Positions 9,192-62,118 of a stretch of 64,000 nucleotides of DNA are shown piece after piece (position 1 is the first letter of the stretch; each line of letters starts with the position of its first letter). Both the position numbers and the translations under genes were made by a program. Source of the stretch: Paraphysomonas bandaiensis (taxonomy: Eukaryota; Protista; Chrysophyceae); contig CBFFRP010000146.1 in the NCBI GenBank assembly GCA_965644295.1, positions 62,001 through 126,000 on the forward strand, written 5' to 3'. Below the pieces are notes generated by a model, which searched no databases, was not told where the DNA came from, and was given only the letters and a program-made list of their open reading frames with translations.

Positions 9192-10168
9192 GTCACTGTG
9201 TTGTGGTTGTTCGATGTGCTCTTGTTTTGCGGAAGTAGCTGAGTGTATGTCGTCATTATTGTCGGTACATAGTACACAGTGCTTCTGAGCGTTGATATTG
9301 ATCGAAATAAATATATAAAGATATTTGTATCTTGTAGCATAAGTTGTGCCTTTGTATGAAACCATGTAGGACTGGAACTGTACAGTGAGGAAAGAGCACA
9401 GACTCGATTACGTCCCCTTGGTTCAACTGGTAGACGGCCGTAATACATTTAAATCGTAACTTTTACTGTTGTGGTCAGATCATAATACTTAATTAAAACT
9501 ACAATGAAGTTCAATACATTGACGGCTATAATGTAGTATTCATGACCAGTGCGCAGTGTATTGTGTATTGGTAACCAATTCAGTAATGGCAACTTATCTT
9601 TCTCAGTACTCAGTACTAATAACGTACTTAGTGCTTAGAACATCTATTAAGAAGATCTAGTTTGCTCAACTTCAAACTTTGATATATATGTACTGAATTC
9701 ATGAAATGAGAACGATCACATACATGGTTTGAGAATCAAAATTTTCCTCTGCAGTAATAAAGTAATAAAGAGATTTAATTTCAATATTAAACAGAAAGAG
9801 ATATTCAAGCACTGCTGTAAAGTAACACTGCAGATGATTAGGTTGAGGAGAGTAAGAGAATCAGTTATTGTTTCTTACTTTAATTAATGTATCATACTAT
9901 TCTTAATAAAATTACTTTTCGGATATATCAAAAACTAAATAAAAGATATATAACATACACTCTATTATAAATATACAAGATATTTTAACACCATAATATA
10001 TACCCTTTGAAATAAGCTAAGAAAACTCATGTCACTGCAAATCATAGTCGGTTGGTGTCTCAAATACGAATGCGATACGACCTTTACTATTGCGCAAAAT
10101 CATACAGAAAATCGGATAAATAAAGTGGATGCGTAAAAACAAGTAAATTTACACTTAGAGCAGATCAT

Positions 10169-17847: not shown

Positions 17848-18145
17848 AGAGTCTGAAAGCCTTTTATATTCAGTGCGATGAAGTATACTCTTCTGAAACT
17901 AAATCTTATGATACGTATTACGGTTGTGAAGCTGAATTTGCTTGAGCTCTATGTAATTACCTACTAAGCAGGGATAGGGAACAGTATATTGCAATACTAT
18001 TGTTAGATAGCGTTCCATCAATAGTATTGATGGATTTTTTAAACCGGTCCTACAATACAATTACAATATATTGCAATACATACATACAATACATACACAT
18101 ACATACATACACGTGCATGCGTTTGCATACATACATACCATACAC

Positions 18146-18611
18146 ATGCATGCGTTTGCTGCAAATTAACGACAAATCTTGAGCATATATAAATTTCACC
18201 TAATCTTATAGTTCATTACAGTACCATCTAATTCTCATTATTGCTTGCGCATGTAACAGAAAAGCAATAACTGTACCCCAATGAATGAACTGATTATTAC
18301 TCAACAGCCCAATAGTACTCCAGCTACACACTCTACTACTCTAGTCTCTAGTACCACTACTTATTACCTGACACTAGCCGGGAGTCTCTGGAGCTGAAAG
18401 CCATTTCTGATGCATTTCTCTTTTTACCACGACTGAGAGCATTGCTCAGTAAGTCGAGCATATCCACTACCTTACCTGCATGGTCTTCTTTTTCCATTTC
18501 AAACACGGTTTCATGCTGTAAATCAGCACATAAATCAACAAAGTACTCGGACTGAACTTTCACTGCGAATTTCAAATGCTTTACTTCCCTCCAATACTAA
18601 TAGGCATACTG
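18146..18611 (-). repeat. About 465-bp segment duplicated at about 30520-30993 (3' end of a pseudogenised ORF plus downstream sequence)
   Basis: Near-identical to the second copy from catgcatgcgtttgctgcaaattaacgac... to ...ccaatactaataggcatactg. Homology stops exactly where an LTR starts (18612). Confidence 0.88.
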
Positions 18612-18896
18612 TGTCAAGATATGACACAATTGGATGATTTACTAAGCAAGTTAACTGGACGTTTATTTACTCATGAATCAAGTTAAGATGAGAGAAGATT
18701 ATAATAAATATAATAAGCAATATATCACGTTATCTCTACTACCACTCATTTCTAGTACGATCTTACATCGTCATGATATCATTTCTCATAATACAGTTCA
18801 TCACTACTGTATTCTTCGACTAACGGTCATAATTCCAACGCCTTAGAATTACAGCTTTTAATTGCTCCAACAGCAGAACTCAACACTCCCTCTCAA
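18612..18896 (-). mobile_element. 3' LTR plus polypurine tract of a truncated LTR retrotransposon (family B) nested in the hAT element
   Basis: TGTCAAG...AGCAGAACTCAACA (18612-18885), homologous to the solo LTR at 41162-41480. Adjacent ctccctctcaa reads as PPT TTGAGAGGGAG on the minus strand. Confidence 0.75.
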
Positions 18897-19858
18897 TTCA
18901 AAGCTGTACATTGAATTGTCAAACCACGAGACATAATGACGGATACGCTGTAGATTGAATCCTTACATCACGAGACAAAACTGACGGATACACAACCACC
19001 AAAAAACCTCGTAGGACAAACCCGTGGACGTATGACTCCGACGTTTCAGCTAGCCTCACCATAGACAACACATCTATATGATCTTCTGTCTCTTATAACC
19101 TCCACGTCTGATTTCTGATCCTCGTCGGATCAATCACACCACAACATTCAACACGCTAAGTTACGTGCGCTTTGGCTGTCAGGAAGAATGGAGTGGATTC
19201 GTACAATCGAAGTCCCAGTTCGACCAACACCCCCCGAAGCCACACCAGTTCCTGCATGCCAGCAGACATAGCCTGATACACTTAAGTGAATCAACGTAAT
19301 TAACGAACTTCGCATATATTATGCCTTGGTCTCTCTACAATTAGACATATTATGTTAGTTATTAGATACAGTCACTGTCATCACACAGATTGACAATCTC
19401 CTCATCATAAAGGTTTACCTCACCCAGGGTGGACACACTAGTCAACACCCGTACGCTTACCACACAAGTCTCTCTAGACTCAGCAGGTACAGTCTCACAG
19501 ACACGATTCACACTAATTTCACTAGATATAATACGAACAGTACCAACACAACTCTTACTGGTCTCCCCAGACGCCGTCGATGCAGTACATACACATGTGC
19601 CTCATACACTCTTCTCCACTGATGAACGGCATCTTCCCCACATAGGAAGTTGATCTCACCCAGAGTGGACACATCAGTAAACAACTCTTCGGATGCTTGA
19701 CTTCAGCAGAAGTCGAGGTAATACCAAAACCTGGTAAAGCGATTTCACCAGGTCTCATATCTAAATATTGAGTTATTATTTTACTGTAATTTGTATCTGA
19801 GAGGTTAAAGATAAAGAAAAAGGCGCAATTATAGTTGTTATTAGCAATATTTATTGCG

Positions 19859-20344
19859 TTACAAGTTGGCCCTGCCACGACTTGTGTTTTGTAATATCAT
19901 ATTCTCATATAGCTGCATTTGCCTCTCTTGAGATTGCAAACGCTCCAACCGAATAGCCTGGTTTTGGATACAATGCATACGCATAAAGCTATCTTCACCA
20001 CTACTACTTACACTAGTAGTATTAGCACCTATGCTCGGAAACGACGCGGCAACAGCCGTTGGGGGCACAGTACTAGTAGGTGGAGGATCATAAGCAGGTG
20101 GAGGATCATCATTTTTTCTCATTAAAAGACCACGAAGTTCTGCTAGTCCGGACATCATTTCCTGACGAAGTTCAGCAACAGCGGGAGGTATCAGATCTAC
20201 TTTCTGCTGAGATTCGACGACCCCGTCACCATCTTCATGTACAGTACTACTGTCCCTGCTCGTGCGCTTTCGCGGTACCTCTTCCTCCGAGTCGTCGTTG
20301 GATATGTCGCCACGAATTTCGACGACATTCTTCTTCCCATTGCA
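19859..20344 (-). pseudogene. Captured terminal exon of an unknown gene
   Basis: Open frame CNGKKNVVEIRGDISNDDSEEEVPRKRTSR...MMSGLAELRGLL...RGRANL* starts right after an acceptor-like TGTGTGTAG. It is out of frame with the upstream header copy. Confidence 0.5.
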
Positions 20345-20354
20345 CTACACACAG

Positions 20355-21183
20355 CATCCAACTCAGTCTCATACTTAGCCACTCTAGCCTCCAAGTCAGC
20401 AATTCTTTTGTCCAATTCAACCATTTCCTACGGCTATTGCTGTGATTGATACACAATTTATATACATAATCTAGAGACAAGACGCCTATATATATAATCC
20501 TGCGTGCGTTTATTTATTTTATTACACTAATTTATTCGTATCGGCATCCTGTGTATATTTTTGTTGAAAGATGCCTCTAATATTGAGGCAATAATTATCT
20601 GTATTCCAGCCGTAGTTGTACTGCAGTAATATAGAGGACATTTGCTTCAATTTATTCCCGAAAATGAAGATGCTGAATGCCGATACGTTAAAAACACATT
20701 CAACTCTAAATTAAACCGGTTCCAAAAACTCCTGAAATCAGATAATATTAGACTGTTTTTTCCTAAAATCCTACTATTTTAGAATTCGAAAAGTTTTATG
20801 TGATCGGTGTACTGTTGTAAACACTCGTATCAGCAGTCAGCATCTTATTTTTCGGAAATAAATTGAAATAAATATTTTCTATATTACTGATATATAACTA
20901 CGGCTGGAATTCAGATAATTGCTGTCTCAATATTTGAGGCATCCTTGAACAAAGGATGCCGATACGCTCTCCCGGATTTCTGGGGTTTCTTCAGGTTGGC
21001 TCCTCTATAGAAAACAACGATTGAATAAACGCACGCAGGATTATATATATAGGCGTCTTGTCTCTAGATTATGTATATAAATTGTGTATCAATCACAGCA
21101 ATAGCCGTAGGAAATGGTTGAATTGGACAAAAGAATTGCTGACTTGGAGGCTAGAGTGGCTAAGTATGAGACTGAGTTGGATG
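20355..21183. repeat. Nested palindrome: identical 160-bp outer arms plus imperfect 140-150-bp inner arms
   Basis: 20355-20514 is the reverse complement of 21024-21183. Inner arms 20538-20688 and 20827-20966 are imperfect inverted copies, each bounded by cgtatc(g/a)gca...atgccgatacg. Confidence 0.9.
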
Positions 21184-22223
21184 ATGCCACTTCCCCCCAA
21201 GAGAAGAGCGAAATCCGGTAGTTAATCATCACGGGAAGAGAGACTCTCAACAGACTGCTGGATGAGAAGAAGGCCCAGATCTCTGCTACTGATGGTTAGT
21301 TCTTGTTTTAATTTCGATTGATATTTGTTAGTTTTGTTTTTCCTGTAGGGTCGTCAACACTGTCAGTGACTGAATTAGTGGCTCGGGCTTGCAAATTGAA
21401 TATTGCAGAGGTGAATCCTAATGCGGTTTCTCGTATGGTTAGGAAGTTTGGATGGAGCGTGGACATAGCTATCAGAACTAATGATACAGAACTCCTTGCA
21501 GGTGCCTACGAAGACGCTTTGAAGTTGCCTTCTGTTCAAACCACTGTAGAGCTGGAAAGGAATGGATTTGTTCTTGATGGAGTGTTGATCAATGGCAACG
21601 ATAATTTGCAGATTTGTTTCAAGGGCTCTGTCCCTTATGTTTTGAAGATATGCTCACCTCAGGAGTACGAGCGCGCCAAGAACTTTGAGAATGTTTTGAA
21701 AGGCCAGCCGCCCTGTCAGTGGATCATTTCATTTGAGCTTTATGAACGACATCCCAAATTCTTCATGTTTATGCCTCTGCATCCTGTCACCCTCGAGCAC
21801 CTTCCTTCTTTAGATTTGATCACAACACCCATGATTTGGACTTGTCTTTCTGGTGCACTGGACTTCCTGCATCAGAATGGCTATGCTCACAATGATGTGA
21901 AGCCTCCCAATATCCTCATCAACACATGCGGTGAGTTTATTCTGACGGATTTGGGTAGTTTGGTGCTGTTCAACTCACGCAGTGCTTCTACTCGGGCCTA
22001 TATTCCGAGGGAGTTGTGGGATCGTCGGAATGACAGAGGTCCTGTTGCTTCTATTAATGCAGACTTTTGGATGCTGGCGATGACCATCTTCGAAAAGGTG
22101 TGTGGAGGTATCATCAATGGAGCTGAATCTCCTAAGCAGTCAACAATAATTGAAGCAATTAAAGCCAATTCAAAATGTGATGATTTTTGTCACGTGTTGC
22201 TTGATCGTCTTGGGATAGTGTAA
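21114..22223 (+). pseudogene. Helical header + atypical Ser/Thr protein kinase with an in-frame TAG in exon 1
   Basis: Exon 1 MVELDKRIADLEARVAKYETELDDATSPQEKSEIR*LIITGRETLNRLLDEKKAQISATD (TAG 21219-21221), intron 21295-21348, then an uninterrupted kinase exon: PYVLKI, HNDVKPPNILI, LTDLG, STRAYIP, ADFWMLA. Confidence 0.78.
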
Positions 22224-22706
22224 GTGTAAATAAGTTATGTATATATGCGGTATTCTTGATTGTGAGTGCGAAAACATCTCTTTGTCCGTCTTGTTCCTGT
22301 TTTAATTCACTCTAATTTCCATCAAAATAGTGTAGAAGTGGTAGTTTTTCGAGTGAAAGAAATACTATTATGATAAAATAATCGGTTTTATCCAACTACT
22401 ACTATTTTTACTACAATTTTATTAATATATTTATTTGGAATCTAAAAGGATATAATTTATTCTAAAAAATTGGACAAGGGATGAACTAGCACGTTAGCTG
22501 ATCTATTAGGTTGAGCTATCGGCTATGAAGCGAGTACAACTTCTCCCCCGCCTTTTTTTGCAATACTTGAGTTGAGACTTGCAAGGATGGTTCAGTTCTA
22601 TGGAAATGGAAAGCATATGGTATCGAATCAGCAGGAGTGAATATTTGCTGCATATGTAGTCATTGCCAGATATTGACTATGGAATCTCTTCAAAACATGT
22701 CGCTTG

Positions 22707-23041
22707 TGCCCCATACTGACAGCGTAACTAATTACTGCGTGCGACCCTCTAGTGGTTGCTGCTGAGTGCTGCGATTGCTCGCCTCTACCTATGTACTCAT
22801 TGCATATTCAGCGCTGAATACCCTGAATACCATGTGATAATGATGTAGCTAGTTGGGTTCTGCCCCATACTGACAGCGTAACTAATCACTGCGTGCGCCA
22901 CCCCCAGTGGGTGCTACTGAGTGTTGCGACCGCGCACTTCTATCTATGTACACATTGCTCAGTTCAGCAGTTCCCCACTCGGGGTCTCACTTCATATACA
23001 GCGCTGAATACCGTGTGATAATGATGTAGCTAGTTGGGTTC
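22707..23041. repeat. Diverged tandem duplication (154-bp and about 181-bp units)
   Basis: Both units start tgccccatactgacagcgtaactaat and end gtgataatgatgtagctagttgggttc (22707-22860 and 22861-23041). Confidence 0.85.
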
Positions 23042-23179
23042 AGTAGGTAGCTAGCAAATAACGTATGGGACTTAAATCAAGTATTAGTTAGGTACCCACC
23101 CCGCCCCCACCCGGCTCTACCTAAGTACGCGCTCAGAATGGGGAAAACATCACCATATTCATCCACAGAATTAATCGAA

Positions 23180-23463
23180 ATATGCTAGTATCCGGCCATA
23201 ACTGTCGAATAGCTTTCAGAAACAACAGTATATTAAGTAGGATGGATACTTTTGCGCAACACTGATATAATATATTTAGCTGTGCTGAACAGACGTTCCC
23301 ATGTATTGGCAGTACATACCAGGGCCAGGCAACCGTTAATGACTCGTGGATCTGTACGTTTCTTAATTTTTTGAGCTGACTGAAAATTTTTAGTCGCATA
23401 GTCAACATCAGCTTCATTATCCTTTGTAATGTTGTAATTAATTTCTCGGTTATTTATATCCAT
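23180..23463 (-). pseudogene. hAT transposase C-terminal dimerisation-domain remnant (frameshifted)
   Basis: TANTWERLFSTAKYIISVLRKSIHP continues in another frame as LNILLFLKAIRQLW, matching the ERLFS...R...L.FLK pattern of hAT C-terminal domains. It lies just inside the right TIR. Confidence 0.72.
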
Positions 23464-23995
23464 TTTGCACCCTACAGTTGAGAATCTTCTCTTATATGAC
23501 TATCATAATATTGATTGCAATATATTGCAATAGTATTGTGAGCTCATTTAGCAGAAACACTATTGATGGAATATTTGTTCAGTCCACCAATCAATATACT
23601 GTACAATGTATTGCAATACAATATATTGTTCCCTATCCCTGCTACTAAGTAGCTGAATTGATATTATTGATAATGACCTATTCTACGTTAGTATGCGATC
23701 AATGTGCCATACTGATACCGCATTATAGCTGGGATATGTGCTTATTCTAGCTGCAGACTGCAAACACATGATTGTAATCTCTAAAGTGTTTAATATTCTA
23801 GGCCTACTGTGTTTTGTGCAGTAATATTTTGTAATCTGTAAACCATTCGAGGAGAGATGGCAAGTACATAATCTCTCAACTACTCTTCATAATCTATACA
23901 TCTTTTATATTAGATGCTGACAATATACTGACATTAGCGTAAAACATTGTATCAAACATTATTTTATACGAATTCATAATCGGCTACAGCCACTA

Positions 23996-24705
23996 TTAAG
24001 ATGTTGGGTCAGTTGAGCGAATTTCATCTCCTCTGTCCCAGCAATCTTCACGTCCTATTCTCCACCGAAGATCTAGCTCTTCCATGTTGCAAGGAAATAA
24101 TGGTAGCCCTAATTTCTCGTTGACTTCGTTATGCAATTGACAGGACCACATTGAGAGTGCCACCCTTGAAGAGACACTGACAGACATAATAAAACAATAT
24201 GACAATATTTCTACAATGCTGCTTACTCAGGAGGAGTTCTATCTAACGATTCGCGGAAGTCAGCAGCACAATGCGGGCAGGGATACACATCAGCCAATGA
24301 CTCGAAAAATCGGGAAGTGCTCAGTTGGACATCTTCGCTGGGATTATCAGGATAATTAGCGGCTATTGTATGTATTAAATTCCAAGTGCTAACACCAAGT
24401 TCTCCTCGCGTCACAGGACAGCCTGGTCAAGCTTTAGGACACTATATTGCGCAACATCAAAATCAACCTTCTGTATAAGGATTCTCTGTTCGCTCTCGTT
24501 TGGATGATTTCTTCTTTTTATTCTTTTTCGCAATCGCAAACATTTCCATTACAGAATTACATGCTGGAATTTCACAGTCAGAATCTTTAGCTATACTTCC
24601 TTTCGGTTGACACCACTGCATGTGATGGGGCTGTATGGTTGCATACGCACCAATAGAACCTGTGATTGCCATCGAAACACCTCTTCTTAACCCTATAAAG
24701 CGCAT
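23996..24705 (-). CDS. ERV1: Erv1/ALR FAD-linked sulfhydryl oxidase (3 exons)
   Basis: N-terminal CxxxC (CEIPAC), CPVTRGELGVSTWNLIHTIAANYP, redox YPCPHC, WSCQLHNEVNEKLG...FPC...RW. Confidence 0.9.
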
Positions 24706-30372: not shown

Positions 30373-30519
30373 GATGAAGTTTAAACAGTAATCAATTAGA
30401 AAATTATAACGATCGTCATTCATTCATTCATATTTGCCAAAATTATATTCTCTCAACTTAACACCTATCATCACTCATTGAATTCACTACAATATTTTCT
30501 CTACTCCACTCAACATACA

Positions 30520-31160
30520 CATGCATGCGTTTGCTGCAAATTAACGACAAATCTTGAGCATATATAAATTTCACCTAATCTTATATAGTTCATTACAGTA
30601 CACCATCTAGTTCTCATTATTGCTTGCGCATGTAACAGAAAAGCAATAACTGTACCCCAATGAATGAACTGATTATTACTCAACAGCCCAATAGTACTCC
30701 AGCTACACACTCTACTACTCTAGTCTCTATAACCACTACTTATTACCTGACACTAGCCGGGAGTCTCTGGAGCTTAAAGCCATTTCTGATGCATTATTTC
30801 TCTTTTTACCACGACTGAGAGCATTGCTCAGTAAGTCGAGCATTTCCACTACCTCACCTGCATGGTCTTCTTTTTCCATTTCAAACACGGTTTCATGCTG
30901 TAAATCAGCACATGAATCAACGACGTACTCGGACTGAACTTTCTCTGCGCATTTTAAATGCTTTACTCCCCTCCAATACTAATAGGCATACTGCTTGGTT
31001 GCGTCGTCTTCAATAACCTCGAGACATACACTCTCCGCTTTTCTACAGGTCACGGGAACCCACTTGTCACGCTCATTTTGACGATAATGAGGCATAAACC
31101 TTTACAATAGCTCTCCCGCATAGTAATGAAGCTTGCTATACGAACTCACAGTTAATAATG
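30520..31160 (-). pseudogene. Degenerate ORF fragment (probably TE-related), longer copy of the segment inside the hAT element
   Basis: RFMPHYRQNERDKWVPVTCRKAESVCLEVIEDDATKQYAY*YWRGVKHLKCAEKVQSEY...LDLLSNALSRGKK, with internal stops. Confidence 0.5.
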
Positions 31161-61406: not shown

Positions 61407-62118
61407 TCATTCTGTCGTACTCATTATTCTGTCTACTTCTTTCACAGCATCACGAACCTACAAGTACATCAGAAATAAAAATATGCACTGCAGTGACAAA
61501 ACTTACACTCGCTAGCAAATCCTGCATTTCTTCAAGACTCGCCATCATATCGACATTTCGCAGAAGTCCTCTATCCTTTACTTTCAGCGTAACAAAATAC
61601 ATGGGAGTGTTATTTCTTCCTCCATGTTTAGAGCGCACAGAATAATCCAGTCTCCAATCAATGTCAACAATAGCTGGTGCACTGATTCCTAATTAGAAGT
61701 TATCTTAATGGAAATCACAAGAGCAAATGTAAAACCTGTCGACTCTAAGTGCGATATTATGCTATCACCATGTTGCGTATACAAATCGACCACAAGTCCA
61801 GCAATATCGCTTGATAATGAATGTTCCACAAACAGATCCCTATCACACCACTATCATTAGCTTTCCCTCATATATATACGTATATATAATAACTAACTTG
61901 ATTTGTTGAGGATCTGCACGTACTTTAGCTGCCTCAAGTAACAATGTTGATAATCCACTGAGAGATATCTCTAATGATTCATCAATTTCAATTGTAGAAT
62001 GCCCTCTTATAACAGTTTGTAAAAAATATTTACAGAGATTTGAAAAGTTTTCAGTGTTGAGAGTTTGGAGACTCTGTATTTCCGTTAAAGTCTTCTGGGA
62101 TACACTTAAAATATCCAT
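61407..62118 (-). CDS. COMMD3: COMM domain-containing protein, COMMD3-like (multi-exon)
   Basis: LSTLLLEAAK in the N-terminal helical domain; COMM domain PAIVDIDWRLDYSVRS...YFVTL...SLEEMQDLLA; last exon VRDAVKEVDRIMSTTE*. Confidence 0.8.

Follow-up and report, generated by a model that had tools for sequence, protein, structure and literature searches.

A single-copy hAT-family element with a mosaic interior and a probable kinase pseudogene in the chrysophyte Paraphysomonas bandaiensis

Introduction

DNA transposons that hold host genes have been described in plants and fungi. Pack-hAT elements of maize are among the known Pack-TYPE transposons (Gisby and Catoni 2022, PMC8903248), and in Pseudocercospora histone H3 was captured by a hAT element of which there are hundreds of copies (Dhillon et al. 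2019, PMC6710886). Here we describe an element of ~5.7 kb, hereafter the composite, which has the ends of a hAT transposon and a protein kinase gene between them. It lies in a 64,000-nucleotide stretch of DNA from Paraphysomonas bandaiensis (assembly GCA_965644295.1, contig CBFFRP010000146.1, forward-strand positions 62,001 to 126,000), which we call the window. An earlier reading of the window (the original prediction) had proposed that the element is a recently moved Pack-hAT that spreads and shuffles Crinkler-like kinase modules. We instead favour, with a probability of roughly one in two, an old non-autonomous hAT copy that inserted once at CTACTAAG and whose interior was built up mostly in place.

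The composite has much in common with the described systems. It has the structural features of a Pack-TYPE element, namely superfamily terminal inverted repeats (TIRs) with a target-site duplication (TSD), the lack of a functional transposase, and a host kinase gene inside, and it shares TIRs, TSD, absence of transposase function and internal host coding DNA with the fungal H3 element as well. Those elements, however, are multi-copy families with their cargo, whereas the composite is a singleton: neither a second copy of the cargo nor a filled/empty polymorphism, as expected of movement with cargo, was found in the assembly, in four runs or in metagenome contigs. It also differs from Pack-TYPE elements in that its interior is mostly transposable element (TE) debris, and in that the gene is whole, with a promoter and an intron, rather than a set of exon fragments.

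The composite resembles the non-autonomous elements of the hAT superfamily (Ac/Ds-type elements and hAT miniature inverted-repeat transposable elements, or MITEs) in its 8-bp TSDs, in TIRs starting with CAGGG and in its short subterminal repeats. As with Ac/Ds-type elements, there is a partner with a Hermes/hAT-like C-terminus and a graded series of internal deletions; the interior of the composite, in contrast, consists of 5 kb of unrelated repeats and a host gene and is not derived from transposase. It is also similar to TE nests, of which a copia element inside a sister MITE (contig C75, see below) is an example, as repeats are stacked in a hAT backbone and the inner elements start at their natural ends. 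Unlike such nests, the composite is without the right halves of its repeats, 168 bp of backbone and the inner TSDs, and it includes a gene segment that is not mobile. Because of these missing parts and the gene segment, insertion alone does not explain the composite.

Finally, the kinase gene invites comparison with Crinkler (CRN/CR) effectors, which are likewise two-part modular proteins. In the kinase family described here different first exons are found on a conserved C-terminal module, the headers are short, variable coiled coils, the kinase is constant, and no Crinkler header was detected. Crinklers are organised in the opposite way.

Results

Element boundaries and backbone

The composite occupies positions 17969-23641 of the window and has a perfect 8-bp TSD, CTACTAAG, at both outer edges. 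Its left TIR, CAGGGATAGGGAACAGTATATTG, is at 17969-17991, and its right TIR (23619-23641) is the reverse complement with one mismatch, at position 16 (22/23). The TIR of the family, CAGGGATAGGGAACA[G/A]TATATTG, is of the YARNG type, as in the hAT superfamily. The subterminal motif ATTGCAATA has 12 matches in the 64-kb window, where 1.16 are expected, and nine of the 12 lie within ~130 bp of the element ends.

The transposase is represented by a remnant on the minus strand. A frame at 23233-23463(-) matches residues 184-250 of the second open reading frame (ORF2) of a 2.4-kb family element (L035) with 60% identity (BLASTP E 2e-21), and an overlapping frame at 23133-23417(-) matches residues 252-275 of the same protein (BLASTP E 9e-11). 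As the two overlapping frames match successive residues, the remnant is frameshifted. It ends abruptly at 23146, and the composite has no functional transposase. The composite copy is a non-autonomous hAT-family element with genuine family termini, and in its account of the 23-bp ends, the perfect TSD, the subterminal motifs, the broken transposase C-terminus and the non-autonomous state the original prediction was accurate.

Compared with the consensus of the dominant family form, a 799-bp MITE, the composite consists of consensus positions 1-113, 5064 bp of foreign DNA and positions 282-799. The backbone in between (114-281, 168 bp), where the transposase coding sequence ends and its 3' region lies, is gone, and because these 168 bases are missing the event was a replacement and not a clean insertion. 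The right arm also has a 22-bp subterminal deletion that is shared with two other copies (L003 and L019). We resolved the interior by genome-wide searches of the eukaryotic assembly (62.5 Mb, 669 contigs) and by comparison with 20 fetched loci. The features, with their window positions and the strand where one applies, are:

17961-17968: left TSD CTACTAAG, read directly from the window; the same letters are at 23642-23649.
17969-18081 (+): left hAT arm, MITE positions 1-113, including the TIR (17969-17991) and two ATTGCAATA motifs; identity of 98.2% to the consensus as well as to 29 copies in the genome.
18078-18159: (CATA)n-type microsatellite with a 33-bp tandem duplication (Tandem Repeats Finder) at the start of repeat A; other A copies start likewise.
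18127-18611: dispersed repeat A, with a natural left boundary and ~160 bp lost on the right; many copies, 96-97% identity.
18612-19696: repeat B, a right-truncated, non-coding element of the long terminal repeat (LTR) type, made of an LTR-like unit (18612-18888, TG start) and internal sequence.
19710-20346: repeat C, multi-copy in genome searches (94-97% identity), with a natural left boundary and truncated on the right.
20352-21186: 835-bp palindrome with 163-nt arms (20352-20514 and 21024-21186) that are 99% complementary, from repeat search and reading of the sequence.
21114-22223 (+): gene for a coiled-coil header and kinase; exon 1 at 21114-21294, a 54-bp GT..AG intron at 21295-21348, and exon 2 at 21349-22223.
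22275-22705: 430 bp of single-copy, non-repeat DNA 3' of the kinase gene; matches only itself in the genome search and is common to no paralog.
22706-22860 (+): D-prime, a truncated piece of an LTR that resembles the first 180 bp of LTR D (74% similarity).
22861-23145 (+): LTR D, ~285 bp, with >230 candidate copies; starts with TG, has AA in place of the terminal CA, and abuts MITE position 282.
23146-23641 (+): right hAT arm, MITE positions 282-799, including three ATTGCAATA motifs and the TIR; 15 substitutions in 483 aligned bases.
23166-23433 (-): remnant, with a frameshift, of the C-terminal (dimerisation) region of the hAT transposase, ~90 residues, corresponding to about residues 184-275 of the 297-aa ORF2.
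23642-23649: right TSD CTACTAAG, read directly.

The mosaic interior

In the left 2.3 kb of the interior, truncated copies of dispersed repeats (A, B and C) are stacked. Each of A, B, C and D-prime starts at a natural family boundary and is cut on its right side; other copies of repeat A, for instance, run on beyond the equivalent of 18611. This pattern of natural starts and right-hand cuts in A, B and C resembles the left half of a stack of nested insertions, which is what had been allowed for in the caveat that some of the cargo could have inserted later. The LTR-like unit of repeat B, 277 bp in length, recurs ~1.8 kb apart at two other loci (L056 and L057). Repeat B (window 18820-19619) had by far the deepest contig coverage in the probable RNA run X8, which suggests that it belongs to an abundantly transcribed, non-autonomous retroelement family. 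We considered a tRNA-derived short interspersed element as the identity of repeat A and rejected it, as no tRNA-like gene was found.

The tandem repeats and the LTR remnant reported earlier were readily located, the former at 18078-18159 and 18903-18991 (Tandem Repeats Finder) and the latter as LTR D. Two other proposed components fared less well. The supposed foreign terminal exon (19710-20346) corresponds to repeat C, a multi-copy repeat whose 99-aa minus-strand ORF has no Pfam match. The segment said to be duplicated 12 kb away does have its match (18139-18611 against 30514-30993, 95.8%), but a segmental duplication was rejected, since the match is merely another copy of the genome-wide dispersed repeat A.

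The palindrome encloses a fold-back repeat (~20533-20688 and 20826-20953). Its right arm is the kinase promoter with the first 24 codons, and its left arm is an inverted duplicate of the same sequence. The fold-back repeat recurs near D-family LTRs at three loci (L051, L052 and L054). We rejected the idea that a D-family LTR retroelement had carried the kinase, because at these three loci the DNA between the fold-back repeat and LTR D is unrelated to the kinase; the intron kept in the kinase gene also contradicts it. Elsewhere in the genome, copies of LTR D are preceded by a polypurine tract. In the composite, LTR D has no 5-bp TSD, and no TSDs were found around the inner pieces.

Over 596 aligned positions, the arms of the composite show 17 differences from the MITE consensus (2.9%), as against 0.4-0.6% for most MITEs of the family, and the inner repeats are about equally diverged from their own family consensus (2.3% for A and 2.8% for both C and D). 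By these figures all pieces of the composite are of similar, moderate age, and the copy is old. With arms that are ~2.9% diverged, a perfect TSD is uninformative on recency, and the proposal that the unit moved recently was not supported. As all pieces are 2.3-2.9% from their consensus, dating cannot order capture and insertion.

The hAT family in the genome

Exact matches to the 23-mer TIR were found 195 times in forward and 185 times in reverse orientation across the whole assembly (380 in total), against none for the reversed control. These 380 exact termini correspond to a family of roughly 190 elements. All 28 copies that could be paired within the fetched loci had perfect 8-bp TSDs. Most copies of the MITE are 99.4-99.6% identical to its consensus.

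The family also includes elements of 2.39-2.41 kb, with TIRs identical to those of the composite's family, that carry two ORFs of 259 aa (ORF1) and 297 aa (ORF2). Examples are G000:C47:4904-7315 (L035 905-3316), C75:147402-149786 and C77:116431-118820. At least 11 copies in the genome have an intact ORF1, with 99-100% identity. An apparently autonomous hAT with the same TIRs, for which the original prediction had suggested a search, is present. At many other loci ORF1 occurs in ever shorter pieces, in line with the intermediate sizes of the elements, and from these partial transposase ORFs the intermediate size classes would be deletion derivatives. The 799-bp MITE is an internal-deletion derivative of the 2.4-kb transposase-bearing element.

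The match of ORF2 to the Pfam family Dimer_Tnp_hAT is under the cut-off (E 9.5e-4, 19.3 bits against 21.4 bits), and a profile built from ORF2 and nine homologs matched, in the PDB, solely the C-terminus of Hermes transposase chains (E 1.2e-4). ORF1, examined for a DDE/RNase-H-like catalytic core and a BED zinc finger, has no Pfam match at E <=0.01, and its PDB matches are spurious ones to ankyrin repeats; by eye, it shows a C..C..H..H stretch and a DGWT motif. The membership of the family in the hAT superfamily is well supported by TSD, TIR and C-terminal region, the last of which gives modest but specific support. Besides a young burst of MITEs and a deletion series, this hAT family includes copies that appear to be autonomous. 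It has been active recently, and with 11 or more 2.4-kb copies that look intact, and with MITEs ~0.5% from consensus, it is a candidate for a DNA transposon that is currently active in this lineage.

Among the first 100 termini listed, the only other paired element longer than 2.5 kb is the sister MITE in contig C75 (5958 bp, G000:C75:71052-77009, L034 1053-7010), which has a perfect outer TSD and is interrupted at about MITE position 741 by a nested copia element. This copia is apparently full length, with an uninterrupted Gag-Pol of 1505 aa (RVT_2, E 4e-58).

Two further observations concern the family. Two 807-bp MITE copies on small contigs, L002 (C657) and L016 (C226), have the identical TSD AGTATGTC and the same length, and probably represent a single locus that is present twice in the assembly, be it as haplotigs or through duplication. 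In run X3, three Logan contigs have the right end of one hAT copy directly next to the left end of another (joint 23641->17969) and are not assignable to the composite copy. Given ~190 copies, the joint most likely represents adjacent MITEs elsewhere in the genome; an end-to-end junction product is the alternative.

The kinase gene and its paralogs

The spliced kinase gene claimed to lie between the TIRs was confirmed as a near-complete gene. Its model of ~351 aa is comparable in length to a 350-aa full-length homolog (P0003). Exon 2 matches Pfam Pkinase above the cut-off (E 1.6e-11) and retains the HNDVKPPN and DLG motifs. No glycine-rich loop is evident by eye in this copy, and the kinase is therefore atypical. 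In exon 1, codon 36 is an in-frame TAG (21219-21221), where the closest paralog (C210) has CAG. The window copy is probably a pseudogene, and with a premature stop codon in its first exon it does not represent the intact effector module that had been envisaged.

Three paralogs of the gene were identified: C304 (L031/L037; 94.7% identity over 960 bp), C370 (L032/L038; 94.0% over 982 bp) and C210 (L033 from ~9433-10000 into L039; 92.2% over 1196 bp, the full shared stretch). All four copies have the intron and exon 2 in common (93-95%), and the homology of the four begins ~15 bp upstream of the splice donor of exon 1. The window copy and C210 have first exons of one coiled-coil type, while those of C304 and C370 are of an unrelated coiled-coil type. 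These comparisons support the view that the kinases form a modular family with exchangeable first exons beside the intron boundary. The similarity of C210 to the window copy (92% identity) covers the header, exon 2 and 37 bp of upstream sequence, and the flanks of the two differ. C210 is degenerate, as its donor GT reads CT and its catalytic loop has an 18-bp deletion, and C304 has a 9-bp deletion. The homology of the paralogs to the window copy stops at 22241-22274.

Kinase homologs of up to 89% identity were found, many of them in other protists and P0003 among them; the nearest named one (87%, EukProt) is from the chrysophyte Chlorochromonas danica. The assembly holds no near-identical parent gene for the window copy, and public assemblies have no record of the exact protein of its ATG-started kinase ORF. 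The label of Crinkler-like was not upheld. Pfam finds nothing but Pkinase in the body of the protein, and in the headers of the C210 type, the C370 type and P0003 it detects no Crinkler header domain, with sub-threshold coiled-coil noise or nothing in its place. In the probable RNA run X8, kinase contigs carry the letters of the paralogs at five diagnostic sites (21728, 21731, 21754, 21825 and 21834) and the unique 3' flank is covered by none, so that there is no sign of expression of the window copy.

Copy number and assembly support

Both junctions between backbone and interior, on the left side (18063-18096) and on the right side (23131-23160, LTR D to MITE position 282), are unique in the assembly with up to three mismatches allowed. 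Genome searches with interior segments found no second copy of the composite, and no TIR lies within ~9 kb on either side of the kinase paralogs C304, C370 and C210. The composite is a singleton, and nothing shows that this element has spread kinase genes; the proposed spreading and shuffling of kinase modules between these TIRs was thus not borne out by the genome, and the lack of any further copy with the kinase cassette is an outcome that the original prediction had itself named as refuting it.

An empty site had been named as a further check on movement. The assembly contains no allelic or empty site, both 600-bp flanks being single-copy in it, and no empty-site joint is listed in the Logan contigs of four runs, which may drop rare variants. 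Exact patterns of 25 nt and 28 nt from the flanks gave zero matches in JGI metagenome contigs, a weak negative as the search was for exact matches only.

Support for the assembly comes from Logan contigs, in which the kinase paralogs are collapsed and of which no single record spans the element. In two runs with different organism labels (X1 and X3), contigs cover both flank-TIR junctions and unique interior with 0 mismatches. A 531-bp contig (22206-22736) runs from the kinase 3' region into D-prime with 0 mismatches, and the segment 22275-22705 was likewise found with 0 mismatches in contigs of X1 and X3. The contigs of these two runs argue against a misassembly. The runs that hold the composite locus are marine, and the host appears to be a free-living protist.

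Discussion

A build-up in place could have proceeded as follows. Retroelements and other repeats (A, B and C) would have inserted one into another within the resident hAT copy, giving the left 2.3 kb. One or more repairs of double-strand breaks would then have deleted the right halves of the stack together with backbone positions 114-281, and the same repair events may have joined in the 2.35-kb non-repeat segment that carries the gene of the kinase family. The inverted duplicate of the kinase promoter and exon 1 around the fold-back repeat would be a scar of fold-back priming at a broken end. We infer this order of events and the repair mechanism from the arrangement of the pieces, and likewise that the composite has not transposed since gaining the kinase segment. 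That a MITE of this family can host nested insertions is seen in the sister MITE with its copia.

Several points weigh against an origin in place. It calls for several independent events, namely three or more nested insertions, one deletion and one repair by fold-back. The perfect TSD around the 5.7-kb unit fits the insertion of the whole unit equally well. Nowhere in the assembly is there a donor copy of the 2.35-kb non-repeat segment, and because copy-type repair would normally keep its template and cut-and-paste of a composite would not, the missing donor favours transposition of the unit. An assembly in 669 contigs may lack the donor locus, and the Logan contigs may have dropped rare empty or MITE-only alleles.

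The alternative that survives best, which we regard as possible but tentative, is that two hAT ends were used together as a Pack-hAT or macrotransposon and that the composite, with its resident kinase gene, was cut and pasted once at CTACTAAG. The ends could have come from two neighbouring copies in the same orientation or from one copy that was already filled, with no amplification afterwards. The mobilisation of neighbouring insertions is a proposed route to Pack-TYPE elements, including maize Pack-hATs (PMC8903248), and the capture of histone H3 by a fungal hAT is documented (PMC6710886). At this locus the alternative would account for the perfect 8-bp TSD around the entire unit, for the similar ages of all pieces and for a single-copy kinase segment and 430-bp flank that have no donor left, as cut-and-paste predicts; a partner with identical TIRs and intact ORF1 is at hand in at least 11 copies. 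However, the interior lacks the TIRs or inner MITE remnants expected from two whole flanking copies, and the natural and truncated ends of A, B and C suggest nested insertion at backbone position 113 instead. No other examined family member carries cargo other than TEs, the composite copy is old and has a nonsense codon, and it is a singleton, a class that the Pack-TYPE pipeline packFinder drops as possible false positives (PMC8903248). The narrower proposal that a gene-carrying hAT macrotransposon excised the whole kinase gene, promoter included, from the locus where it originally lay and pasted it in at CTACTAAG appears to us doubtful.

A less probable history, and in our view an unlikely one, is that the interior is filler from a gap repair that was aborted. 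Once the transposase had made a break in this copy or attempted to excise it, synthesis would have proceeded inward to backbone positions 113 and 282 and then switched to ectopic templates, so that fragments of repeats and of a kinase paralog were patched in and the composite never transposed. The replacement of 168 bp by 5064 bp, an interior pieced together from truncated fragments that abut one another, and the repair-type scar seen in the inverted duplication at 20352-21186 are all consistent with it, as is the graded internal-deletion series of the family, the usual product of interrupted gap repair. Random switching, however, would not start again and again at a natural family boundary, as is seen for A, B, C, D-prime and D, and the assembly has no template for 22275-22705 or for the exact kinase copy; the nearest paralogs are 92-95% identical over the stretches that they share and have different flanks. 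Moreover, 5 kb is long for filler DNA.

An artefact, in which ends from different MITE insertions were misjoined through the repeats of a repeat-rich interior that no single read-derived record spans, is very improbable, as an identical 8-bp TSD at both edges would arise by chance in ~1 of 65,000 cases, the flanks are single-copy, and the flank junctions and unique interior (e.g., 22206-22736) are matched with 0 mismatches in X3 and also in X1.

The locus as found is an ordinary case, an old singleton hAT copy that has turned into a repeat nest with a probable kinase pseudogene. It has a bearing on annotation, as an automated Pack-TYPE caller would flag the locus for its TIRs, TSD and gene, and such singletons are not to be counted as gene-shuffling vehicles. 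Two by-products have a wider use, namely the hAT family, which is apparently active, and the kinase family with its clean swapping of first exons. Had the composite moved as a unit, gene relocation of the Pack-hAT type would be extended to stramenopiles, beyond the plant and fungal lineages of the cited examples, and as a macrotransposon the same hAT family may help to reshuffle the first-exon-swapping kinases. As Pack-hATs in maize and an H3-carrying fungal hAT have already been described (PMC8903248, PMC6710886), even this favourable reading would be a known phenomenon in a new lineage.

One neighbour of the element was noted in passing. About 350 bp to the right of it, at 23996-24205 (-), is an ORF with a stretch that by eye resembles the sulfhydryl oxidases of the Erv1/ALR type (...HNEVNEKLG...).

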